Shown here: piece by piece, positions 2 through 48,629 of the stretch
Position numbering within the stretch: the stretch's first letter is position 1
Layout of the letters: each line of letters begins with the position of its first letter
Virus record (IMG/VR): IMGVR_UViG_3300037010_002844
Location: 186,001 to 250,000 of that record
Length of the DNA stretch: 64,000 nt
Direction: 5' to 3' (one strand)
Translations under genes and position numbers: made by a program
The notes under the pieces: generated by a model
Seen by the model: only the letters and a program-made list of their open reading frames with translations
Told to the model about the DNA's origin: nothing
Database searches by the model: none

Positions 2-1777
2 ACCCTCCACGTCTTCAAAGGCGCTGCCAAACAAGATGGAGGCAGTAGACAGCATGTTGCCTAGGTGAACGTAGCTCAGTTCTTCGACCCCGTCGTCACC
101 GACCATGATGGTCCTAAGGCTCTCGCTCGCCAACAGTTCATAGGCAGGGATAAAGTTGCCATCGTCGCACGGCAGGATCAGCAAGTTCCTAGCACGGACC
201 TTGGGATCATCGTACAGAAAATCGTTGGCGGCTCGAGCCTCTGTGGTGTAGTCAATGACCGACGCCGACAGATCGTGAGCCCGAGGGAAGACGTCGCTCG
301 CAAAGTCACGCAGGTAATTTTCAATGTTGATGTAGTGACCATTGACGCCGAACGACATGGCCACGTTGAACGGTGACTGCGTGGTGCCGTCGACCTCAAA
401 GAAGGGCGTCTGCATGATGCCACCGTGAGTGCCGACGAACTGCCTGAAGGGCGATTCCTGAATGAAGAACGGAGGCAAATAGAAGGCGACCAGGTTCCAG
501 TCGAGCAACTTGGGCCCCTGAGACGCAGAAAACACGATGTCATCGTTGCTCATGTAGAAGCGCTTGAGCGCCACGTCATGAAGTTCAGCATTCAACGGGT
601 GATTGAAGGCTACCGCAGCTGAGATTGGCGCGTCGATTCCAACCGTGCCATTGAGTTGCGTCAGACCCTCACGGAGGGCCGGATCTGCCGCAAAGAACAA
701 TGATTGCTCATTGTTGCCTTTGTTGGTCCCCTCCCAATAGTTGCCAACGCACAGAACCGATGGCATGCCCTGGGCAGGGTCGCCAAACAACAAGGGCGCC
801 ACTGTGCCGCTTGGAATGACGAACAACCCCTTGTCAACGCCGTCAATGTTGAAGCTGCCAGTTCCTTGGTTGATGAGACTCGTGCCCCAGCGAACCACCA
901 CGTGGTGCCAGCGATTCCACTGCAACGAGTTATCGTCAGACAAGAACACAAGATCGTTCGGATAATTTCCTGGCAATGCCTCTGACGGCCGCGTGTCTGC
1001 GCTATGGCTCAACTGGAGCAATAGACGATAGCCAAGAGGCCGACCATTTTGGTCCTTCGCTGAGCCAGTGACCAACGACAAGGCATAGCACGATGAAACG
1101 TGCATGATGGTGCCAGCCTTGAACTGGCCATTGGGCTCCTCTGTCTGGTAACGTGGATTGATGTAGAAATCGAACGAGAATGAACCACTCAATGAGTAAT
1201 TGAGCGCCACGTAACCCTCGTGAGCCTGGTCGCTCATAGAGACATCGTAGTTCGGATACAACAGCACTGAACTCGTCGGAACAGAAGATGCGGTGAAGAA
1301 GTTCAGGGAGTTGTAGTTGGAGTAGGCCCAGTGCGCCGACGGGTACGACGTCCTGTAGTATTTCATCAAGATGTCCTTGACGATCAACTTCCTCGTGGTG
1401 TTTGAGCTGAAGTTGACGGAAGGCGTGAACCTGATGATGTCGAGAATCTTCTGCTTACGCGCTGAGATCGCCTGGCTGTCGACCTTGGACAAGTAGTCAT
1501 CCAGCATCCCAGGAAACTTCTCTGCGATGGTACTGACGTACTTAGCCAGACGCCCCAGCATCGTCAACTGACCGATGGTTGCGTTGAGGTCAGAATCGTC
1601 TTTCGTCGCATCAACGAACCCGGGTAGGGAGGTGACGTCTTTTTCGATCGACGACCGTCGAGCAAAAACGTGAACTGACCCAGTCACGCCCATCGACGAC
1701 GAGGAATATTGCCTAATCGGATTGGCGATGACGCTGAACGACTCTAGGTCGTTCTGGCTAACGGGGGTGAGTGACAT
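2..1777 (-). CDS. LamG/concanavalin-like domain virion structural protein (partial, runs off the window edge)
   Basis: Not in the ORF track. Hand translation from ATG at 1777 (AGGAG upstream): MSLTPVSQNDLESF...FSFDFYINP...WNRWHHVVVRW...FNIDGVDKG...ELHDVAL, a LamG-type pattern. Confidence 0.7.
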   Translation of the reverse strand, partial: MSLTPVSQNDLESFSVIANPIRQYSSSSMGVTGSVHVFARRSSIEKDVTSLPGFVDATKDDSDLNATIGQLTMLGRLAKYVSTIAEKFPGMLDDYLSKVDSQAISARKQKILDIIRFTPSVNFSSNTTRKLIVKDILMKYYRTSYPSAHWAYSNYNSLNFFTASSVPTSSVLLYPNYDVSMSDQAHEGYVALNYSLSGSFSFDFYINPRYQTEEPNGQFKAGTIMHVSSCYALSLVTGSAKDQNGRPLGYRLLLQLSHSADTRPSEALPGNYPNDLVFLSDDNSLQWNRWHHVVVRWGTSLINQGTGSFNIDGVDKGLFVIPSGTVAPLLFGDPAQGMPSVLCVGNYWEGTNKGNNEQSLFFAADPALREGLTQLNGTVGIDAPISAAVAFNHPLNAELHDVALKRFYMSNDDIVFSASQGPKLLDWNLVAFYLPPFFIQESPFRQFVGTHGGIMQTPFFEVDGTTQSPFNVAMSFGVNGHYINIENYLRDFASDVFPRAHDLSASVIDYTTEARAANDFLYDDPKVRARNLLILPCDDGNFIPAYELLASESLRTIMVGDDGVEELSYVHLGNMLSTASILFGSAFEDVEG

Positions 1778-1827
1778 TCCTGCTCCTCATCATAACTATA
1801 CCCCGTTGCATCGGGGGCCTCAGTCCG

Positions 1828-1965
1828 TCAGATGTTGCAGATGACACACTGGTTGGTCACCTGGCCATGTCGTGCCGTGGAACATTTGACTGAACAGAAC
1901 TTCTTGTCCTTCTTGTAAGACTCGAAGGGCTTTAAACACGTTTGGCATGTGTATTGATAACGCAT
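1828..1965 (-). pseudogene. Zn-finger remnant of a homing-endonuclease-type gene (45 aa)
   Basis: MRYQYTCQTCLKPFESYKKDKKFCSVKCSTARHGQVTNQCVICNI*; same CxxC..F..KFC..C pattern as the N-terminus of 44412..45059. Confidence 0.5.
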
Positions 1966-2014
1966 GCCAAATCGTACAACTTTCTGTTTGACTGCTTACC
2001 AGTCGAGAATCATC

Positions 2015-3283
2015 CTAGAAGTCAAGTCTGACACGGAGCGTGAGATCCCTCTCAGGCGACTTCTCCACCGGCCTCGACAGCTTAGCCACCGCCAACAGGT
2101 TATCGTTGGCATCGTAGAGACCAACTGAAGTGATGAAGGTGAACGTCTGCTGCGTGTCTTCCTGACCCGGGTCAATGACGACGATTCGATTGTCAGCGTC
2201 AGTGAACGTCGGGTTGGACGAGTAGTTGAACTCGTCGGCGCCGGCGCGGCAGAAGATCAAAGTGCTGTTGATATTCGTCACGTTTTGGAACGTGATTGCT
2301 GACTGTGAGCCAGAACCAAATCGACACGCGGCGATGTGGTCGACGATGTTATCGATCGACGCAGAGACGACAAAGTCAGGAATGAACTTCTCGGCAAAGT
2401 TGGCCTGCCGGCCCGTCTCGGTGTGCGGGTCACCCAGTGTGATCCTACCCAACGGGTGCATTGCGTCGATGACGCCCGACATGAACTGTGAGCCAGACGT
2501 GATCTTGGCCATGTCAAGGACCATGATGCCACGGTCGTAGAACATCAGGCCGACTGACCGATTGGTGTTTGCAGAATCGACAATATTACCGACCTGACCG
2601 CCAAACGCCGTCAACTTGTTGGTCGACGCACCGATGTCGGTGTAAATCGCTGACCCTGAGGTCGAGGTGACATTGAGATTAGTGACGCCCGGATTATCGC
2701 CGTAGCCATTGAGCTGCGGTGGCACGTCAATGCTGGAGCCATTAGGACCGACCGCGACGAACGAGGCCGACTGATAGAACCGCATCGCCATCGTCTCACG
2801 TTTGATCTGATCGCGTGCAAACAAACGCTTGAAGGCGATGAACAACGCCACGTCCATCGAGTCCGACACGCCAGTCGAATCAAAGGGCGCCTTGAACGTC
2901 TGTGTCGAATCACCCAACAAAGCTTGCGAGAACTGACGATAGACGTCCAACTTTTCACGCATCATCAGTGAAGATGATGGGAACAGTTCCTTACCCGCTG
3001 CGTCGGTGCCCAACTGGCTCGACCGTGCCGTGGTGCCGCCAGGCAAGATTCCCAGCGTCATGTCGAAGATCGGGTTCGCTGTCTGCAGACTGAAGTCCTG
3101 ATCATAGACGGTCTGAAACAGCGAGCTGGTCACGCCAGGACCAATGCCGCCAGTGACGAAGACCTGGTACTTGCGCCGCGAAACTGAACCGCTGATGTCC
3201 TCCTGAAGGACGTCGATGAGCTGGTTCAGAAATGAGCGTGCCGTCTTGATGTCGCTCGGAAGGATTTCCTTGAAAATTGCCAT
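2015..3283 (-). CDS. Putative baseplate/tail structural protein with tail-collar-like C-terminal motif
   Basis: 422 aa; C-terminal ITSVGLYDANDNLLAVAKLSRP...RLDF motif typical of large myophage tail/baseplate proteins; structural operon context. Confidence 0.6.
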   Translation of the reverse strand: MAIFKEILPSDIKTARSFLNQLIDVLQEDISGSVSRRKYQVFVTGGIGPGVTSSLFQTVYDQDFSLQTANPIFDMTLGILPGGTTARSSQLGTDAAGKELFPSSSLMMREKLDVYRQFSQALLGDSTQTFKAPFDSTGVSDSMDVALFIAFKRLFARDQIKRETMAMRFYQSASFVAVGPNGSSIDVPPQLNGYGDNPGVTNLNVTSTSGSAIYTDIGASTNKLTAFGGQVGNIVDSANTNRSVGLMFYDRGIMVLDMAKITSGSQFMSGVIDAMHPLGRITLGDPHTETGRQANFAEKFIPDFVVSASIDNIVDHIAACRFGSGSQSAITFQNVTNINSTLIFCRAGADEFNYSSNPTFTDADNRIVVIDPGQEDTQQTFTFITSVGLYDANDNLLAVAKLSRPVEKSPERDLTLRVRLDF

Positions 3284-3300
3284 GGGTCAGTGGGCTCCGA

Positions 3301-4017
3301 TCACAGATTCTTGTCGATGATGACGGTGATGTCCTTGACGGCACCTGACTGGACGCCTGTGATCTTGATGTAGGTCTTGATCTTCGACTTGTTGGCCGTG
3401 CTGCCGTAGACCGAGAACAAGGCGTCGGTCAGTGACTTGACCGAGAGGGTGAACTGGACGCTCGACCCGCCATATGCGTTCTCAGTCGGTGAACGGGTGA
3501 GGATGTAGGTCGCACGCTGCTGGCCGTCGACATTTTCAGGCGTGTTGCGGAGGACCTGGCAGAAGAGGTTCGGCACCTCAATGATGAACGTTTGGTCGCG
3601 GAGTTCAACGTCGATCGAAGTCTCGTTCTTGATGACCTGTTCCAACGTCATGGTCGACGTCTTCTGCTGATTACGACCCAGGGTCACCACAGCATTCAGA
3701 CCGTCAACGTTAGCATCGCCAGACAGGCTCAACGCAGGCAGCCTCAACAGGTTGGGGTTTGAGACGCTGATCAACTTGAACTTCTGCGAGTGTTGCTGAT
3801 TAGTCAACGCCTCGAAGATCGGCGTGTTCTTCTCGATCTTTTCACGGCCAACGGTACGACCATACTTCGAGATGATCCCATAGTTTACCTCATCGTCACC
3901 AAGAGCAAACTTGTGTAGTGAAAAGCTGCCGTCATTGCGGGCCAGGAACTGGCGCCCTACGTCAGTTAGCACAGCGTCGAGGATGATATTGTTAGTTGAA
4001 TGATCAAGGAACCCCAT
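3301..4017 (-). CDS. Conserved phage structural protein (MGxLD...LTxxGR..LA...FALGDDE family)
   Basis: 238 aa; N-terminal motif shared with the paralog at 12696..13736. Confidence 0.6.
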   Translation of the reverse strand: MGFLDHSTNNIILDAVLTDVGRQFLARNDGSFSLHKFALGDDEVNYGIISKYGRTVGREKIEKNTPIFEALTNQQHSQKFKLISVSNPNLLRLPALSLSGDANVDGLNAVVTLGRNQQKTSTMTLEQVIKNETSIDVELRDQTFIIEVPNLFCQVLRNTPENVDGQQRATYILTRSPTENAYGGSSVQFTLSVKSLTDALFSVYGSTANKSKIKTYIKITGVQSGAVKDITVIIDKNL

Positions 4018-4020
4018 GCG

Positions 4021-4206
4021 TCACCGTGCCTCTTTTTGTTCTTCTGCGTAACGCCAGAAATAGCCAGCGTGTGATTCTCGTATACCTCGGCAACAATCAC
4101 CAGTGCGATCCTTGTGACCGTTAACGGCTTGTGCAGCTTCTTTCATTGAAGCGTAAGTAGTTAGCGCAGTCCCGTTCAGAACATTGCGAACCTCATACAC
4201 GATCAT
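4021..4206 (-). CDS. Mini NUMOD1-domain protein (homing endonuclease remnant)
   Basis: YASMKEAAQAVNG....DCCRGIRESHAGYFWRY is NUMOD1-like; it begins with MIVYEVRNVLNG, resembling a GIY-YIG first strand. Confidence 0.6.
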   Translation of the reverse strand: MIVYEVRNVLNGTALTTYASMKEAAQAVNGHKDRTGDCCRGIRESHAGYFWRYAEEQKEAR

Positions 4207-4293
4207 GGTGATCTAGCCTTTACGTATTGCTCTATGGCGAGAAACTGCCCATCGACATCTGAATCCTACTTTTCACAGTGCGTCCGTAAACGA

Positions 4294-37872: not shown

Positions 37873-38883
37873 ATGCGCGAGTTTGGCGTCTACATTGGGC
37901 GATTTCAGCCCTTTCACAATGCGCACCTAGAGATGGTGCGTTTCGCTCTTAAGCAGGCCAAGCGCCTCATCATCGTCGTCGGTAGCGACAACCAGGCAAG
38001 GAACGTCAAAAACCCCTGGACGACTGCGGAACGAATCAACATGATTCGTGGACCGCTCACTGACGAAGAGCGAGCGCGGGTTGATTTCATCCCCGCCAAG
38101 GACTACCTCTACAACGACAACCTCTGGATCACTGCGGTACAGCGCTCAATCGATGAGGTCACTGACGGGTCAAAGGATGTCATCTTGGTCGGTCACAAGA
38201 AGGACGCCTCGAGCTTCTACTTGAAGCTGTTCCCACAGTGGGACTTCGTGGAGACCGGAATCACAATGGATGTCGATGCAACTCATATCCGTGAGTTGAT
38301 GTTCACGCAGGACAAGATCGGCATTAAGAACCTGGTGCCCGAGGCTGTTTACGGCCAACTTCTGGCGTTCATGGCAACGTCCGAGTTCCAGCGACTCCAC
38401 GAGGAGTACCACCACATCGCGGCGTACAAGGCCTCGTGGGACGGTGCACCCTTCCCTCCGACGTTCAATACCGTCGATGCCATCGTGGTCTGCAGTGGTC
38501 ACGTCCTCGTCGTCCGCCGCCGTGGTGCTCCGGGCAAGGGTTTGATCGCCCTGCCAGGAGGATTCCTGAACGTCAACGAAAAGATCGTCGATGGGATGGT
38601 CCGTGAGCTCAAGGAAGAGACAGGCATCAAGGTTCCGCCCCTCGAGTTGAAGAAGGTCATCGTCGATCAGCGGGTCTTCGATCATCCTGGTCGCTCGCTC
38701 CGCGGACGCACCATCACGCATGCCTTCTGTATCAAGCTTCCCGACGGGGAGCTACCGCAGGTCAAAGGCATGGACGATGCCGACAAGGCCTGGTGGATGC
38801 CTCTGCGAGACGTCTTCTCTCGGGAAGATCAGTTCTTCGAGGATCACTTCCACGTCATCAATTACTTCGTCAACCGCTTCTAA
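37873..38883 (+). CDS. nadM: Bifunctional NMN adenylyltransferase / ADP-ribose pyrophosphatase (NadM-Nudix, NatV-like)
   Basis: GRFQPFHNAH (HxxH), GHKKD.SS.YL, Nudix box GGF...E....MVRELKEETG. Confidence 0.93.
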   Translation: MREFGVYIGRFQPFHNAHLEMVRFALKQAKRLIIVVGSDNQARNVKNPWTTAERINMIRGPLTDEERARVDFIPAKDYLYNDNLWITAVQRSIDEVTDGSKDVILVGHKKDASSFYLKLFPQWDFVETGITMDVDATHIRELMFTQDKIGIKNLVPEAVYGQLLAFMATSEFQRLHEEYHHIAAYKASWDGAPFPPTFNTVDAIVVCSGHVLVVRRRGAPGKGLIALPGGFLNVNEKIVDGMVRELKEETGIKVPPLELKKVIVDQRVFDHPGRSLRGRTITHAFCIKLPDGELPQVKGMDDADKAWWMPLRDVFSREDQFFEDHFHVINYFVNRF

Positions 38884-38935
38884 ACCGCCACGATCGGACC
38901 AGAGAGGTCAGCGTGGCACTCACGGAGAGTGAATC

Positions 38936-40324
38936 ATGTGCAACACCGACTACAACATCATACTAGATTGTGACAGTTACAAGGCTTCGCACTGGCTGCA
39001 ATACCCGCCCAAGACGACCAGCGTCTTCTCGTACATCGAGAGCCGTGGCGGCCGCGACAGCGAGACAGTCGTCTTCGGCCTGCAGTACTTCCTGAAGCGC
39101 TACCTCTCGAGGCCCGTTACCCAGGACAACGTCGATGAGGCCGCCGCGTTCTACGCAGCTCATGGTGAGCCCTTCAACAAGGAAGGTTGGGATCACATCG
39201 TTAAGGACCACGGGGGCAAGTTGCCTCTGCGAATCCGAGCAGTGCCAGAAGGGACCGTCGTCCCGACGTTGAACGCACTGGTCACGGTCGAAAATACCTG
39301 CCCACAATGCTTCTGGACCACCTCGTGGATCGAGACGATGTTGCTCCGCGTCTGGTACCCGATCACGGTGGCGACCGAGAGCCGACACATCAAAAAGCTC
39401 ATCATGAGCTTCCTGGAGAAGACCTCGGATGACCCCAGGGGTGAGATCAACTTCAAGTTGCACGATTTCGGGGCTCGTGGAGTCTCGAGCCAAGAATCGG
39501 CAGCAATCGGTGGCGCCGCGCACCTGGTCAACTTCATGGGCAGCGACACTGTCGTTGGCGTGATGACCGCGAATCGTTACTACAAGACGCCAATGGCCGC
39601 GTTCTCAATTCCAGCTGCTGAGCACTCGACCATTACCTCGTGGGGCAAGGAGAACGAGGCGGAGGCCTACCGCAACATGCTACGGAACTTCGCTAAGCCT
39701 GGAGCACTGGTCGCGGTGGTCAGCGACTCGTACGACATCTACAATGCCTGTGAGCACATCTGGGGCGAGACCCTGCGTCAGGAGGTCAAGGATTCGGGCG
39801 CCATCGTGGTGGTACGTCCGGATTCGGGTCACCCGCCAACCGTGGTGCTCAACTGTCTGCGACTCTTGGAGTCCAAGTTCGGTTCAACTGTCAACTCGAA
39901 GGGCTACAAGGTCCTGAACAACGTTCGCGTCATCCAAGGTGACGGAATCAACCGTGACAGCATCTATGCGATCCTGGACGCGGCGGTGAAGGCCGGCTTC
40001 TCGGCGACCAACATCGCCTTCGGCATGGGAGGCGCGTTGTTGCAGCAACACAACCGCGATACGCAGAAGTTCGCCATGAAGTGTAGTCATATTGTGGCAG
40101 ACGGCCTTGAGATCGACGTCTTCAAGGAACCAGTGACCGACTCGGGCAAGCGCTCGAAGAAGGGGCGTCTGGACCTCGAGGTCTTTGAGGGGCGATTCAC
40201 CACGGGCCGAGTCCCAGTTGGCAAAGAGAAGCTGCCGTACTCAATCATGGAGACGGTGTTCCTGGACGGTGAGGTCCTGAAAGAATACACCCTCGATGAG
40301 GTGCGAGCCCGCGCAGCCCTGTGA
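38936..40324 (+). CDS. nadV: Nicotinamide phosphoribosyltransferase (NAMPT)
   Basis: DSYKASH..QYP, LHDFGARG, SIPAAEHS, VVSDSYD, VRPDSG, IQGDG, FGMGGALLQ. Confidence 0.95.
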   Translation: MCNTDYNIILDCDSYKASHWLQYPPKTTSVFSYIESRGGRDSETVVFGLQYFLKRYLSRPVTQDNVDEAAAFYAAHGEPFNKEGWDHIVKDHGGKLPLRIRAVPEGTVVPTLNALVTVENTCPQCFWTTSWIETMLLRVWYPITVATESRHIKKLIMSFLEKTSDDPRGEINFKLHDFGARGVSSQESAAIGGAAHLVNFMGSDTVVGVMTANRYYKTPMAAFSIPAAEHSTITSWGKENEAEAYRNMLRNFAKPGALVAVVSDSYDIYNACEHIWGETLRQEVKDSGAIVVVRPDSGHPPTVVLNCLRLLESKFGSTVNSKGYKVLNNVRVIQGDGINRDSIYAILDAAVKAGFSATNIAFGMGGALLQQHNRDTQKFAMKCSHIVADGLEIDVFKEPVTDSGKRSKKGRLDLEVFEGRFTTGRVPVGKEKLPYSIMETVFLDGEVLKEYTLDEVRARAAL

Positions 40325-40800
40325 GGGTTGACATGGACGACGATCCGGATTACGATGACATCATGAACGTATTGGACATCAACAACATCCACGGTACCCT
40401 TTGGCAGGGTGCCATTCCGCCGGCAGGCAGCCTGCTGCGTGATAAGGGTTTTGATGTCGTGGTGCTCGCAGCAAGTGATCACCAGGACGCCTCATGGTAC
40501 CCGGGTCTTCATGTCATCCTCGCACCGGGCGATGACGATGAACGTCCACATCGACTTATGAACTTCTTGCCGACATGGCAGGCGGCCGCCCGAGAGGTAG
40601 CCAGCCACGTCAGGTCAGGCAAGAAGGTCCTAGTCACATGCATGTCAGGGTACAATCGCAGCGGGATTGTGACCGCGATGGCCCTTCATGAGTTGACAGG
40701 TTGGAATGGCCACGTCTGCGTCGAGACGATCAAACGGCGCCGTCAGTATGCCTTGTCGAACAAGACATTTGTGGCTTGGGTCCACGACAACCTCAAGTAG
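40321..40800 (+). CDS. Dual-specificity/protein-tyrosine phosphatase-like protein
   Basis: CX5R motif VTCMSGYNRSG; acidic loop GDDD. Confidence 0.8.
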   Translation: MRVDMDDDPDYDDIMNVLDINNIHGTLWQGAIPPAGSLLRDKGFDVVVLAASDHQDASWYPGLHVILAPGDDDERPHRLMNFLPTWQAAAREVASHVRSGKKVLVTCMSGYNRSGIVTAMALHELTGWNGHVCVETIKRRRQYALSNKTFVAWVHDNLK

Positions 40801-40942
40801 GTTTAAGCCCTCTGTGTCAATCTTTGTACATAAAAGACGAATTTGACATCAACATGTGTCCTTTATGTGCAAAGATTACAGAAGTTTTAGGGACCTGTAC
40901 AAGACGCCACCTGTGTTGTATTTACAATACAAAGGCATCGCC

Positions 40943-40996
40943 ATGTACGTCATGTATACGCAGAACTATCCACAGATGATTCTCCGCGAGCATTAG
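40943..40996 (+). CDS. Putative leader peptide (17 aa, ends TAG)
   Basis: MYVMYTQNYPQMILREH*; AAGG upstream; continues in frame as LPRGPP into the next gene. Confidence 0.55.
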   Translation: MYVMYTQNYPQMILREH

Positions 40997-41006
40997 CTGC
41001 CGCGAG

Positions 41007-41071
41007 GTCCTCCTTTTCGCGCTCTTACCTCACCCGTGATTGAGTGCACTTTCAGAAAGAAAAGAGAGGAC
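41007..41071 (+). promoter_or_regulatory. Anti-SD/SD attenuator hairpin
   Basis: GTCCTCCTTTTC (41007-18) pairs GAAAAGAGAGGAC (41059-71) as 12 bp with one bulge; nested GCGCTC/GAGTGC helix. Confidence 0.65.
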
Positions 41072-41074
41072 ATC

Positions 41075-41422
41075 ATGAAGAACATCTATTTGCGCGTACT
41101 TCGCGCCAAGATCCGCGGTCTGCAGGCCACCGGCGTTTCGATCCACAATCGTATCCGCAAGACGAGCGGCAAGCGACGTGATTCGCTGTGGCAGGAAAAG
41201 CGAAGGATTGGAACCTTCAACAGGGAGCACCTGATTGCTTACGGTTTGCTTCGCGGCATCCCGTATGAGAGGATTGAACATTGCTCAAACGTAAATCGAC
41301 CCAGTCCCGCAAGGATTCACGAGCTGATGCTCGCCCACATGCCTCCTTGGGAGGCAAAAAAGCTCACGGTGGAGGCGGTGCAGGCCCTTCTCGAGCCCAC
41401 GGAAAAAAGGCTCGAAAAATGA
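41075..41422 (+). CDS. Basic hypothetical protein
   Basis: GAGAGGA SD; R..HLIAYGLLRG.PYE.IE motif; coupled to the PTH2-like gene. Confidence 0.75.
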   Translation: MKNIYLRVLRAKIRGLQATGVSIHNRIRKTSGKRRDSLWQEKRRIGTFNREHLIAYGLLRGIPYERIEHCSNVNRPSPARIHELMLAHMPPWEAKKLTVEAVQALLEPTEKRLEK

Positions 41423-41778
41423 GTGGTGGAAACCACAAGGTTAAGACGGGGGATAAATTGTACCTCGTCACGCGGCGAGACATTGCGCCTGGTTACCAGG
41501 CCGTGCAGTCTTGCCATGCCATTCGACAGTTCACGGCTGATCATCCTGATCGCGATGGTGAGTGGTTTACCAACTCTAACTACCTCGCGTTGCTGTCAGT
41601 GGCCGATGAGGTAGAGCTGATGCGTCTTATCACCGCTGCCAAGGACCATGGCCTGCGTTGGAGTGCTTTCCGTGAACCTAACGTGGGAGGCGCCATCACG
41701 GCGATCGCCATCGAGCCACATCCCAAGACGGCAGAGCTCTGTAAGAACCTGCCACTGGCGCTCAAGGAACTGTCATGA
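41419..41778 (+). CDS. Peptidyl-tRNA hydrolase II (PTH2)-fold protein
   Basis: Start moved to MSGGNH; KLYLVTRRDI..G..AVQSCHA, L.LSV.DE.EL, FREP...GAITAIAIEP. Confidence 0.7.
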   Translation: MSGGNHKVKTGDKLYLVTRRDIAPGYQAVQSCHAIRQFTADHPDRDGEWFTNSNYLALLSVADEVELMRLITAAKDHGLRWSAFREPNVGGAITAIAIEPHPKTAELCKNLPLALKELS

Positions 41779-42131
41779 GCGACGAACACAAGGCGCCCGA
41801 CACAATCACCTTCGATGACTTCTTGAAGGTCGATATTCGTGTGGGCGAAATCACTAAGTCAGAGGCAGTGCCCAAGAGCGACAAACTTGTCAAGCTCGAG
41901 GTCTACTTTGGATCCGAGATCGGCTATCGCACCATTATGGCCGGCATCGCTAAGAGCTACCACGTGGAGATGTTGGTCGGCACTCGGGTGTTGGCCGTGG
42001 TCAACCTTGCGCCTCGCAAGATGATGGGCGTTGAATCACACGGAATGCTTCTAGCAGGACATGACCCGGTGACGGGCACAGTTACACTTGCCACGTGTAT
42101 GGGAGTTCCCTGGGGAGAACGAATCGGTTGA
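41775..42131 (+). CDS. tRNA-binding OB-fold protein (Trbp111/CsaA/MetRS C-terminal-like)
   Basis: ITFDDF.KVDIRVG.I..E.VP.SDKL, VVNL.PRKMMGVESHGMLLA. Confidence 0.9.
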   Translation: MSDEHKAPDTITFDDFLKVDIRVGEITKSEAVPKSDKLVKLEVYFGSEIGYRTIMAGIAKSYHVEMLVGTRVLAVVNLAPRKMMGVESHGMLLAGHDPVTGTVTLATCMGVPWGERIG

Positions 42132-42172: not shown

Positions 42173-42781
42173 ATGAATCATGGCAACGGAAATCGCGAAA
42201 GTTTCTTCAGGCATTTGGATTCGTTCCTAGCCCCGAGCGTCATCCTCAACGTGCAGCATGCCTACACGATGGCAAAGTATGGCAACCGCGCGTAGGTTCG
42301 AAAGGAATTGGACGACCACGGTGATCCCGTCAGGTACTTCGAGCACGTGCGCCAAGTGGCCATCGTCCTGATCGACAAGGCCAAGATCGTCAAGTCAGAG
42401 ATGATAATCTCTGCGTTGCTCCATGACGTGGCGGAAGACGCTCCCAACCTGCCGCCCGTGTTGATCGAGCGCTGCTTCGGCACCGATGTCATCGAGATCA
42501 TCAAGACTTTGAACAAGGTGCCCGAGGAAGGTTATTTTGAGTGCTTCAACATGTCGACCGACTGGCGTCCGTTCATCAAGGCACGTGATCGGCTCGACAA
42601 TCTCAGGACGTTGGGGGCAGCCTCTAAGGAGTTCCGTGTCAAGCAGGTCGCAGAGACCCGCGAGAAGTACTTTCCGTTGTTCGACGTCATGATGACTCTG
42701 ACGCCCGCACCTATCTCAATCACCCCCAGACGCTGCGTGACCTGGTCCGAGCCGAGACGGAGAAACAAGTGCTGCTACTGA
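42173..42781 (+). pseudogene. HD-domain (RelA/SpoT hydrolase, Mesh1-like) gene interrupted by in-frame TAG
   Basis: ATG 42173, TAG 42293-95 in A*VRK; ALLHDVAED and DRLDNLR motifs; C-terminus looks degenerate. Confidence 0.8.
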
Positions 42782-42800: not shown

Positions 42801-42873
42801 GCCTCGGTAGCTTAGCGGGCTAAAGCTGCGGTCTCTAAAACCGCGATCGTGGGTTCGACTCCCACTCGGGGCA
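42801..42873 (+). tRNA. tRNA-Sup, anticodon CUA (amber suppressor)
   Basis: Acceptor GCCTCGG/TCGGGGC, D arm GCTT/AAGC, anticodon stem GCGGT/ACCGC with loop CT-CTA-AA, T arm GTGGG-TTCGACT-CCCAC; CCA not encoded. Confidence 0.9.
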
Positions 42874-42875
42874 CT

Positions 42876-42947
42876 GCTCCTGTAACTCAATGGCAGAGTG
42901 ACGGATTCTAACACCATGCGTTGAGGGTTCAAGTCCCTTCGGGAGCG
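42876..42947 (+). tRNA. Second tRNA with CUA anticodon, anticodon stem degenerate (possibly pseudo)
   Basis: Acceptor GCTCCTG/CGGGAGC, D arm ACTC/GAGT, loop TT-CTA-AC, stem ACGGA/ACCAT with 2 mismatches, T arm GAGGG-TTCAAGT-CCCTT. Confidence 0.75.
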
Positions 42948-43016
42948 TCATGGAAACTGCCTTTATCTGTGATCACTGCGGCAAGCGTTGTAGCCTCGAG
43001 CAAATGCTTGAGCTCC

Positions 43017-46347: not shown

Positions 46348-47508
46348 ATGAAGACTGTGATTCTTCGGGGTCCAACGTTGACCCAATCAGGATACGGCGT
46401 TCACGCTCGCCAGGTTGCACGTTGGTTGCTCGACAAGCCCGGTATCGATGTCAAATTTCACTTGCTGCCTTGGGGTGACACGCCTTGGTTGCTCGACAGC
46501 AACGCACATGAAGGTCTGGTGGGCGAAGTGATGAAGCGCTCGGTCGGCCCTGACGCCCATAGTGACGTGTCATTTCAGCTGCAGTTGCCCAATGAGTGGG
46601 ACCCAAAGGTTGCTGCTTGGAACGTAGGCATGACAGCCGGTGTCGAGACAGATCGCTGCAACCCATCGTGGATTGAATACTGCAACAGGATGTCACAGAT
46701 CATCGTTCCAAGTCAGCACGTGTTGGCCAACCTGACAAGCACGGGCAAGGTGTCGACGCCCATCGCAGTGGTTCCTGAGTCGTTCGTTGATTCGGTGCTG
46801 TTGGACGACGACAAGCTGCCTAAGTTGCCCGAGTTCTCAACCAAGTTCAACTTCTTGGTTTTTGGTCAGTTGACGGGTAACAACCCGTTCAACGATCGCA
46901 AGAACACCTTCTTCACCCTGAAATGGCTGTGTGAAGCATTCAAGGATGACAAGGACGTGGGCATCGTCATCAAGACCAACGCCGGGCGTAATACAAAGAT
47001 CGACAGGAACATCATCAAGAATGTCCTGTCGGGCGTCCTGGCTGAGGCTCGCAAGGGTCCGTATCCCAAGGTTCACCTGCTTCACGGTGACATGGATGAC
47101 CTTGAGGTAGCAGCGTTGTACCGTCACCCACAGATCAAGGGCCTGGTCACCTTGACGCGGGGCGAAGGCTATGGATTGCCGATCCTCGAGGCAGCTGCCA
47201 GTGGCCTACCAGTCATCGCAACCGGATGGTCAGGGCACCTCGATTTTATGAAGCTGGGCAAGTACGTTAGCATCTACTATCAACTCGGTGAGGTACACCC
47301 GTCCAGGATCGATGGCCAGATCTTCGTGAAGGGCTCCAAGTGGGCCAATCCTTCCGAGGAGGACTTCAAGAAGCGAATCGTCAAGTTTCGCAACTCTCAT
47401 ACCATCCCGAAGGAGTGGGCCGACGAGCTAGCCACTCGCCTGCGAGGACACTTCAGTTTCCCGGAGATCGCCAAACAATATGACGAACTCCTGAAAGACG
47501 TGCTCTGA
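46348..47508 (+). CDS. GT4-family glycosyltransferase
   Basis: Start moved to MKTVILRG; QSGYG, DRKN, TRGEGYGLPILEAAASGLPVIATGWSGHLDF. Confidence 0.92.
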   Translation: MKTVILRGPTLTQSGYGVHARQVARWLLDKPGIDVKFHLLPWGDTPWLLDSNAHEGLVGEVMKRSVGPDAHSDVSFQLQLPNEWDPKVAAWNVGMTAGVETDRCNPSWIEYCNRMSQIIVPSQHVLANLTSTGKVSTPIAVVPESFVDSVLLDDDKLPKLPEFSTKFNFLVFGQLTGNNPFNDRKNTFFTLKWLCEAFKDDKDVGIVIKTNAGRNTKIDRNIIKNVLSGVLAEARKGPYPKVHLLHGDMDDLEVAALYRHPQIKGLVTLTRGEGYGLPILEAAASGLPVIATGWSGHLDFMKLGKYVSIYYQLGEVHPSRIDGQIFVKGSKWANPSEEDFKKRIVKFRNSHTIPKEWADELATRLRGHFSFPEIAKQYDELLKDVL

Positions 47509-47816
47509 TGATTACGACGATTGTCATACTGTCGCTGCTCTGTCTGACACTTGCGTTCTTCATCTACGTTAGCGTAAAGAGGAACCTCGAGTACCAAGAC
47601 AAGATGCAGGAAATCGTCGATCAGACAGAGGTAGCGCTTGACGTGTTGAACACGTGCTATCAACGAGCGGCCGCACGGGCAGAGCTCGAGGTCATGAGCG
47701 ACGAACCCGTCGTCCGTGAGCTCGTGCAGGACATCAAAATGTCCCGTGACGCCATACTGCTTGTTGCAAACTTGATTGTCGAGCCGATTCAGGACGACGA
47801 GGAAGGCAACAAATAG
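47508..47816 (+). CDS. Small membrane-anchored protein
   Basis: N-terminal TM helix ITTIVILSLLCLTLAFFIYV; ends TAG immediately before the next ATG. Confidence 0.75.
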   Translation: MITTIVILSLLCLTLAFFIYVSVKRNLEYQDKMQEIVDQTEVALDVLNTCYQRAAARAELEVMSDEPVVRELVQDIKMSRDAILLVANLIVEPIQDDEEGNK

Positions 47817-48629
47817 ATGGCCGCCCGCAAAAAGACGACCCAGAAATCACCCGCAAAGAAGGCAGCACTCGCCGCAATCGTCCCATCTTCTCCCCCTGAG
47901 AAGGAAGAGCCCAAGACGGAGGAACAGAAGAAGGCTGCGAAGCAGTCGAGGATGTACTTCAATCAAAATACGCAGGCCGCGATCTGCGCCTACCAGAAGG
48001 AAACTGACAGGAAGGAACGCGAGAGGCTCTACGTCAATGAAATCATGCCAGCGTTTGAGAAGTTGACAGAGAACCTGATCAACATTCACAAGTTCACCAG
48101 CCTGCACGACACCTACGATGATTTGAAGAACGACTGCGTCAACTTCCTCTTTGAGACGATTCACAAGTTCGACGGCACGCGAGGGACCAACGCTTTTTCG
48201 TACTTCAACGTGGTCGCCAAGAACTGGTTGATCATCAGGACAAAGCAGAAGGCACAGCGCGTCAAGCGTTCGGTGTCGCTGGACGATCCCAACTCGCTGA
48301 ATGCTCATGAGTTCAACATCGTCGAAGAGCACAACATGGTCCCGTCTGCTGAGATGATCATGGAGAATGAGACCAGCGCAGCTGGCGTCCTGAAGATGTT
48401 GTACGAAATCAGGACCCGCGTCAAGACAGAGAATGAGCTGGCGTGCATCAACTCCATCATCACCATCTTCGAAAACGTTGATGATGTTGACTTGTTGAGC
48501 AAGAGTGCCATCCTGCTCTACATGCGTGAACTGTCGGGCCTGAGTCCTAAGCAGTTGACAACGACGATGCAGATGGTCAAGAAGCACTATCGCAAGTTGA
48601 AGGGCGACGCTAAGTTTCGCCTGTTCTGA
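47817..48629 (+). CDS. Putative phage late sigma factor (T4 gp55-like)
   Basis: YFNQ..Q.AI..Y, DL.NDCV.FL.ETIHKFDGTRGTNAFSYF resembles sigma region 2 and gp55. Confidence 0.65.
   Translation: MAARKKTTQKSPAKKAALAAIVPSSPPEKEEPKTEEQKKAAKQSRMYFNQNTQAAICAYQKETDRKERERLYVNEIMPAFEKLTENLINIHKFTSLHDTYDDLKNDCVNFLFETIHKFDGTRGTNAFSYFNVVAKNWLIIRTKQKAQRVKRSVSLDDPNSLNAHEFNIVEEHNMVPSAEMIMENETSAAGVLKMLYEIRTRVKTENELACINSIITIFENVDDVDLLSKSAILLYMRELSGLSPKQLTTTMQMVKKHYRKLKGDAKFRLF

Follow-up and report, generated by a model that had tools for sequence, protein, structure and literature searches.

Arrest peptides of the RAPP type (ApdA, ApdP, and ApcA), together with SecM (RAGP), control secDF, yidC, or secA via stem-loops that sequester a Shine-Dalgarno (SD) sequence. 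In the RAPP-type cases known so far, a force that pulls on the nascent peptide releases the arrest. Of the arrest cores, RGPP and RAPP are the most robust; they function behind varied upstream sequences and are refractory to elongation factor P (EF-P) (PMC12992588). In the arrested ribosome, RAP-tRNA occupies the P site and Pro-tRNA is accommodated in the A site, with no peptide bond formed (PMC10951233). Such peptides also occur upstream of genes with other functions (PMC12992588), so their link to Sec/YidC is typical rather than strict. Here we describe a leader at positions 40943–41077 of a 64-kb window (the whole stretch of DNA that we analyzed) from the 309-kb viral contig IMGVR_UViG_3300037010_002844. 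In this leader, RGPP codons lie behind a TAG stop codon, at the head of a gene cluster that contains two tRNAs with the anticodon CUA. From its sequence and that of its relatives, we consider it probable that the element acts in translation to report how active the phage's own amber suppressor tRNAs are.

The leader resembles ApdA, ApdP, ApcA, and SecM in having an R-G/A-P-P core, the same predicted stall sites, and a hairpin over the SD sequence of the next gene (PMC12992588, PMC10951233, PMC7897499). Unlike in the ApdA/ApdP/ApcA class, a stop codon (TAG 40994–40996 in the window) parts the upstream open reading frame (uORF) from RGPP and no start codon follows it, here and in all relatives. 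We propose that ribosomes reach the core only by nonsense suppression or, in some relatives, by +1 four-base reading. Also unlike that class, the leader encodes no signal or transmembrane segment and no Sec/YidC gene follows it; downstream are p115 (a protein of 115 aa), a PTH2-like peptidyl-tRNA hydrolase, a tRNA-binding-domain protein, and an HD phosphohydrolase. The proposed input would be tRNA rather than pulling force, and the proposed output a tRNA-related phage operon.

Other systems share single features with the leader. The +1 frameshift of prfB, which encodes release factor 2 (RF2), at CUU UGA C likewise sets a release factor against alternative decoding at an in-frame stop, and relatives of our leader with a TGA stop also end up in the +1 frame. 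In prfB, however, P-site slippage is aided by an internal SD sequence 3 nt upstream of CUU U and yields the full protein, whereas here TAG and RGPP are in frame 0, and the last sense codon of the TGA-class relatives varies (CTC, TTC, GCC, GGC, TAT, TTG), with no SD sequence before it. In our proposal, moreover, the release factor would be opposed by a dedicated suppressor tRNA, and what is made would be a stalling peptide with a cis effect on a different gene. In AMD1, as in the proposed mechanism, ribosomes that have passed a stop codon meet a conserved downstream arrest sequence (PMC13025110); that system is eukaryotic, relies on near-cognate readthrough, has a 384-nt tail, and inhibits through queuing, with neither an SD hairpin nor a dedicated tRNA. 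In an engineered tna leader carrying TAG, an amber suppressor tRNA controls downstream expression (Liu, Yanofsky and Arkin 2011, as described in PMC6412442). That switch is synthetic and acts through Rho-dependent transcription termination, whereas the leader here is natural and would act translationally through RGPP.

Suppressor tRNAs are also found in the "code-change modules" of stop-recoded phages, alongside aminoacyl-tRNA synthetases and release factors, and the possibility has been raised that phages react when suppressor tRNAs are produced (Borges et al., bioRxiv 10.1101/2021.08.26.457843). The cluster described here similarly groups phage suppressor tRNAs with translation-related genes. 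It differs in that both the window and the related loci keep to the standard code and the cluster contains no synthetase or release factor gene; Borges et al. describe no cis-acting sensor. Full-text literature searches returned no natural suppression-gated arrest leader and no phage tRNAs that read UGAA. Our comparisons support the view that the element is an arrest-peptide leader with a new kind of input, for which we found no prior description. If so, we know of no earlier natural regulatory element that gauges nonsense suppression. Suppressor tRNAs of phages with standard-code genomes would gain a concrete role, and arrest peptides of the RAPP/RGPP kind would acquire a tRNA as input in place of secretion force. 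The small, portable parts of the leader could find use in synthetic biology, as orthogonal switches or reporters of suppression and of quadruplet decoding.

A candidate arrest core lies behind the stop codon of the leader uORF

The leader uORF (40943–40996; plus strand, as are all parts of the leader and the genes and tRNAs of the cluster) begins with ATG at 40943 and consists of 17 sense codons (MYVMYTQNYPQMILREH) followed by TAG at 40994–40996. The 17-aa peptide has no transmembrane segment. Past the stop, the codons CTG CCG CGA GGT CCT CCT (40997–41014) encode L-P-R-G-P-P, so that the candidate arrest core RGPP (CGA GGT CCT CCT, 41003–41014) starts two codons beyond TAG. No start codon is present between TAG and RGPP, and translation of the uORF frame runs on past RGPP up to the ATG at 41075. 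The TAG, the LPRGPP codons, and the open frame are thus all present as described in an earlier sequence-only reading of this DNA. The site at 41003–41014 is the only one on the plus strand of the window that encodes R-[G/A]-P-P; from base composition, we estimate that about 5 such sites would be expected per strand. R[GA]PP was not found in the gene frames of the window.

The same arrangement is conserved in 50 distinct leaders

We gathered related loci via p115, via the PTH2 protein, and via individual distant p115 homologues. After removal of duplicates, 50 distinct leaders were available, all from uncultured, mostly large phages and including the window leader. All 50 have the same layout: a short uORF starting with ATG, a stop codon, a spacer of 1–12 codons, and R-x-P-P. 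Each locus that includes the gene start contains exactly one R-x-P-P coding site upstream of it, which in the first set of loci lies 85–108 nt 5′ of a conserved LRAK motif. The core is RGPP in 47 leaders, RAPP in one (L048), and RDPP in two (L147 and L151). The strongest evidence that the arrangement did not arise by chance is its conservation across these 50 leaders. This set supports the core idea of the sequence-only reading, in which RGPP is reachable only past the leader stop and doubles as the anti-SD strand.

The leaders fall into classes according to the stop codon and the frame of the core (spacing is counted from the first base of the stop to the Arg codon). Eleven leaders, including that of the window, have TAG with RGPP in frame 0, at spacings of 6, 9, 12, or 15 nt, and four have TAA, also with RGPP in frame 0, at 12, 15, or 33 nt. 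The largest class comprises 33 leaders in which the stop is TGAA and RGPP is in frame +1, at 19, 22, 25, 28, 34, or 40 nt (L005–L018, L023, L028–L041, L048, L051, L054–L069, L143–L146, and L151 are the TGA-class loci). The base after TGA is A in 33/33 of these. Single leaders have TAGA with RGPP in frame +1 at 31 nt (L052) and TAGG with RGPP possibly in frame +1 at 37 nt (L150). Although spacer length varies widely, it does so by whole codons: 13 different lengths occur over three classes, and the frame is always kept.

Codon usage within the core is unrestricted, as all six Arg codons (CGA, CGT, CGC, CGG, AGA, and AGG), all four Gly codons, and, at each Pro position, all four Pro codons are used. 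This use of synonymous codons, the RAPP and RDPP variants, and one leader (L018) that encodes RGPP in codons that are not anti-SD argue for selection on the peptide. Taken with the pairing described below, the conserved site appears to be selected both as peptide and as RNA.

The uORF peptide itself is conserved in some leaders. Peptides of the form M-Y/F-x-M-Y-T/S-Q-N-Y-P-Q-M-x-L-R-E-x are encoded in the window (40943–40993), L017, L020, L029, and L034, which include both TAG-class and TGA-class leaders. In other leaders, the peptide is merely M-T-G-F-L.

Several observations concern the minor classes and the TGA class. The L052 leader (3170–3300) reads ATG TTG TAGA, then 27 nt, then CGT GGA CCT CCA in the +1 frame; we looked for further TAGA/+1 leaders and found none. 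L150 (300–432) reads MTKEL-TAGG, with R-G-P-P after a further 11 codons in the +1 frame; its contig has no tRNA, and the leader may represent a UAGG four-base class. TGA-class leaders contain a 4-bp hairpin (GCGG-loop-CCGC or GCGC-loop-GCGC) between UGAA and RGPP, about 10 nt after the U. The fourth pair of this hairpin covaries (GC in 9, CG in 5, and UG in 1) as the encoded peptide changes, and the hairpin could stimulate the recoding event.

Leader stops match the anticodons of suppressor tRNAs in the same cluster

Two tandem tRNA genes with the anticodon CUA (42801–42949) close the window's gene cluster. Both were identified by ARAGORN and by Rfam (RF00005): amber suppressor tRNA 1 (42801–42874; 60 bits) has the 7-nt anticodon loop CUCUAAA, and amber suppressor tRNA 2 (42875–42949; 49 bits) has the loop UUCUAAC. 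At the Rfam gathering score, these two tRNAs are the only matches in the window, and the leader matches no family.

In all 38 leaders with a tRNA on the contig, the leader stop matches the suppressor anticodon of the same cluster (one TAA-class tRNA is ambiguous). Nine TAG leaders are accompanied by CUA and three TAA leaders by loops containing UUA (the ambiguous tRNA among them), while 25 TGAA leaders match tRNAs that have 8-nt anticodon loops containing UUCA (AUUUCAAC, CUUUCAAU, ACUUCAAG, and others). The TAGA leader of L052 is accompanied by a tRNA (4134–4208) with the 8-nt loop CU-UCUA-AU, which is complementary to UAGA.

On a tree of p115, the leader class label switches about seven times, with the reservation that the protein is short and many branches are weak. 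Among the sister pairs are L046 (TAA) with L048 (TGAA; support 99/96) and L049 (TAG) with L073 (TAA; 95/92). The switches imply that stop and anticodon have been exchanged together repeatedly. It is plausible that the tRNA is a dedicated trans-activator for the leader. The match between TGAA/+1 leaders and UUCA loops is also an indirect genetic indication that phage tRNAs naturally decode UGAA by four bases (or in +1), and the TAGA/+1 leader likewise points to such decoding by a tRNA with an 8-nt anticodon loop.

A broader interpretation, which we regard as possible but tentative, is that these suppressor tRNAs are not tools for genome-wide recoding but private trans-activators, each the key to a cognate lock made of a stop plus RGPP. 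Key and lock may have been re-cut together several times (UAG, UAA, UGAA, and UAGA). If an 8-nt loop reads UGAA or UAGA as a four-base codon, leaky readthrough in the host may be unable to set off the switch. The transcript that includes the tRNA genes could, in addition, be shielded by translation of the operon, creating a self-reinforcing timer.

The RGPP codons are predicted to pair with the SD sequence of the downstream gene

RNA folding of the leader gave −26.7 kcal/mol (z = −2.3). When 211 nt were folded, z was −3.7 and 0 of 200 shuffled sequences folded equally well. The 5′, anti-SD arm (41001–41018) overlaps the RGPP codons and is present in both the minimum free energy (MFE) and centroid structures; the 3′ arm (41059–41077; GAAAAG-A-GAGGAC and the bases after it) includes the SD sequence GAGG. 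In the main stem, 41007–41018 pairs with 41059–41064 and 41066–41071, forming 12 bp with A41065 bulged, and outer pairs extend to the UG of the start codon (AUG 41075–41077). A nested inner helix (41019–41047; 41019–41028 with 41036–41047) differs in sequence among relatives. Within the ensemble, the SD core GAGG (41066–41069) has a pairing probability of 1.0. Folding therefore reproduces the 12-bp pairing, the single bulge, and the nested helix of the sequence-only reading. Since the anti-SD strand (GGU CCU CC) is made up of the RGPP codons, the codons of the proposed arrest core are those that bury the SD sequence and AUG of the gene at 41075–41422.

Pairing between anti-SD and SD (the bases GGN CCU C) was present in the MFE structure of 24/24 related leaders folded, with a median z of −2.65. 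As a whole-leader MAFFT alignment placed the 3′ arm out of register, we anchored pair counts on RGPP and GAGG instead. The wobble base of the Gly codon covaries with the base after GAGG (A-T in 15, T-A in 5, and G·T in 4), such that 24/24 are paired; this is the anti-SD covariation among homologues that the sequence-only reading had said to look for. An SD-sequestering hairpin is present in all of the 50 leaders except one variant (L018).

A model for suppression-dependent opening of the hairpin

In the mechanism we propose, release factor 1 (RF1) would, when suppression is absent, terminate uORF translation 11 nt short of the main stem. The hairpin would stay closed, with no translation of p115, PTH2-like hydrolase, or tRNA-binding protein. 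When charged tRNA-CUA outcompetes RF1, a ribosome would pass the TAG and arrest at RGPP, with CCT 41009–41011 predicted in the P site and CCT 41012–41014 in the A site. With a footprint of approximately 40995–41027, this ribosome would keep the whole anti-SD arm inside its mRNA channel, leaving the SD sequence, about 50 nt downstream of the stall and beyond the footprint, free for repeated initiation. A long-lived stall that is refractory to EF-P would turn rare readthrough into a lasting ON state.

We infer that suppression drives the ON switch because a ribosome that terminates at TAG would reach only the outer pairs of the hairpin. For the same reason, lingering at the TAG, which the sequence-only reading had offered as a trigger equivalent to readthrough, is unsupported. 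That reading had also named amber suppression or RF1 shortage as the quantity sensed. We retain suppression, most likely in the form of phage tRNA-CUA competing with RF1 rather than of RF1 shortage on its own.

Several points weigh against the proposal that the leader reports suppression. Readthrough, arrest, and SD opening are all deduced from sequence and comparison; translation of the uORF is putative, and transcription start is suggested only by a conserved box. Nothing comparable to the pulling-force relief of RAPP-type arrests is visible in the leader. The phages' own genes use the cognate stop: TAG ends 8 of 63 open reading frames (ORFs) in the window, and 70% of 213 ORFs in TGA-class loci end in TGA, a quarter of these in TGAA. 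As cognate stops end the phages' own genes, suppression is presumably weak, restricted, timed, or context dependent. The L018 variant (with copies L019, L047, L074, and L075) retains RGPP without the SD hairpin. In this leader (3942–4010), MNVFL-TGAA precedes RGPP encoded as CGT GGG CCG CCC, no SD/anti-SD hairpin is visible, and RGPP is only about 30 nt 5′ of a non-ATG start. Finally, 8-nt anticodon loops also occur beside the frame-0 leaders L020 (ACUCUAAG; 2584–2657), L046 (CGUUUAAU; 3043–3120), and L147 (AUUUUAAC; 1634–1706), and the L147 leader is read in frame 0 despite a UAAA stop context. Loop size alone is therefore no predictor of frame.

Alternative explanations

The features of the leader could be explained in other ways. 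If the site acted solely as RNA, the SD hairpin might be a thermometer, or might serve p115 or the tRNA-binding protein as an operator, with RGPP a by-product and the uORF and its stop irrelevant. Pro-Pro encoded as CCU CCN is automatically anti-SD, and the hairpin is the most stable local feature; a protein-binding role for it is possible. A structural by-product would not, however, be expected to show Arg codons that switch between the CGN and AGR families, Gly codons of all four kinds, and RAPP and RDPP variants, or to lie always in a frame reachable from the stop despite 13 spacer lengths. Neither the retention of RGPP in non-anti-SD codons in L018 nor the covariation of the stop with the tRNA anticodon fits an RNA-only element, and we regard this explanation as very unlikely. 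We give still less credence to a recoded ORF, in which the gene would really begin at 40943, with its TAG decoded as an amino acid in a TAG-recoded genome. The frame is indeed open over 40943–41422 save for the TAG, and the phage does encode tRNA-CUA. Yet p115 homologues all begin at the Met equivalent to 41075, and additional length, where present, is C-terminal, which indicates that the leader is not an N-terminal extension of p115; R[GA]PP was found in 0 of 184 p115-family proteins fetched. Moreover, RGPP is followed by a stop in L004 (RGPP-stop) and in L007 and L038 (RGPPR-stop), and in other relatives it lies in a different frame from that of the gene. The shared frame with ATG 41075, which the sequence-only reading had noted, is therefore incidental, since stops follow RGPP in many relatives and the family starts at the 41075 Met. 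Code use, which we judged on 64 of the 309 kb, points the same way. Coding fraction in the window is 92% under the standard code and 95% when TAG is taken as sense, and with 8 ORFs ending in TAG we conclude that this stretch of the genome is not TAG recoded and reject genome-wide TAG recoding for the window.

The remaining two alternatives keep the device and change its input or its sign. The leader could sense the termination capacity of the host (RF1/RF2 activity or translation stress), with the phage tRNA only setting the baseline. Because readthrough is a competition between tRNA and release factor, any change in RF1 would register. Near-cognate readthrough of UAG is nevertheless rare when no suppressor is present, the leader stop and the phage anticodon have switched together repeatedly, and +1 TGAA/TAGA leaders match four-base complements in tRNA loops. 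The joint switching and the four-base complements argue that the tRNA is the specific partner, and we consider a host-termination input unlikely. Readthrough and arrest might instead lower operon expression through mRNA cleavage or ribosome queuing, as negative feedback. Keeping a potentially toxic suppressor under homeostatic control would be sensible, and in AMD1 stalling after readthrough is inhibitory (PMC13025110). The arrest site here, in contrast, is the anti-SD strand, and the SD sequence lies about 50 nt past the stalled ribosome. This matches the layout of activating leaders such as secM-secA, and a conserved SD hairpin would be superfluous in an inhibitory device. This opposite sign thus seems improbable, and activation by suppression is the reading we prefer.

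Genes downstream of the leader and neighboring features

Under activation by suppression, we infer that the output is a tRNA-care module tied to functional suppression. Plausibly, the amount of tRNA-care protein made scales with suppression, and the module may serve to cope with by-products of suppression or to set its level.

The first gene (41075–41422) encodes p115, a basic helical-hairpin protein of 115 aa. It has no sequence match in Pfam, PHROG, or PDB. Its AlphaFold model (predicted local distance difference test [pLDDT] score of 90) is a long helical hairpin with small helices; no significant fold match was found in PDB, only a weak likeness to helical hairpins (HisKA and the SerRS arm). 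There are 38 close homologues, and the family comprises 757 clusters at 50% identity.

The PTH2-like peptidyl-tRNA hydrolase gene (41419–41778; PF01981, E = 6e-8) begins within the stop of p115 (ATGA), and the gene for the tRNA-binding-domain protein (41775–42131; PF01588, E = 2e-22) likewise overlaps the stop of the PTH2 gene. Because of these overlaps, the three genes are probably translationally coupled. PTH2 is the next gene after p115 wherever the locus is long enough, except in L148 and L151, where none was called, and L150, where a different gene intervenes. It is also the best conserved gene of the cluster, usually 60–89% identical versus 40–78% for p115, with identity falling to 36–42% in the most divergent loci. 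The tRNA-binding-domain gene is present in a subset of the related loci. Farther downstream are an HD_4 (RelA/SpoT-type HD) phosphohydrolase gene (42308–42781; PF13328, E = 4e-9), the start codon of which is uncertain, and, beyond the two tRNA-CUA genes, a PD-(D/E)XK nuclease gene.

Upstream of the uORF is a putative promoter of the leader transcript (40894–40924), consisting of a conserved box (CCTGTACAAG), a 17-nt spacer, and a −10-like element. Within it are a −35-like TGTACA (40896–40901) and a −10-like TATTTA (40919–40924). The box aligns 5′ of the leader in most related loci, each time with TAnnnT 17–18 nt downstream, and the window contains only 2 exact copies of it. This TGTACA-N17-TAnnnT arrangement is our putative assignment of the promoter. 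Between the box and the stop of the preceding phosphatase gene (40798–40800) is an inverted repeat (40819–40877) with 20-nt arms that are 90% complementary and a 19-nt loop containing TTGACA. It may be a terminator or an operator.

No DNA-level relatives of the window were found among deposited phages. A second candidate for TAG readthrough was considered at 47508–48629, where a 102-aa ORF ends in TAG (47814–47816) and directly adjoins the in-frame ATG of a 270-aa late-sigma-like protein (phrog_234). We rejected readthrough into this gene (47817–48629), as the small upstream ORF is in varying frames in homologous loci. The largest apparent gap in the window (952–2014) is 1063 nt without an ORF of at least 70 aa on either strand in the standard code.

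Directly upstream of the leader region, 37873–40800 encodes NMNAT-Nudix, NAMPT, and a dual-specificity phosphatase. This segment looks like an NAD-salvage/host-takeover island, and it is syntenic with the tRNA module in many relatives.

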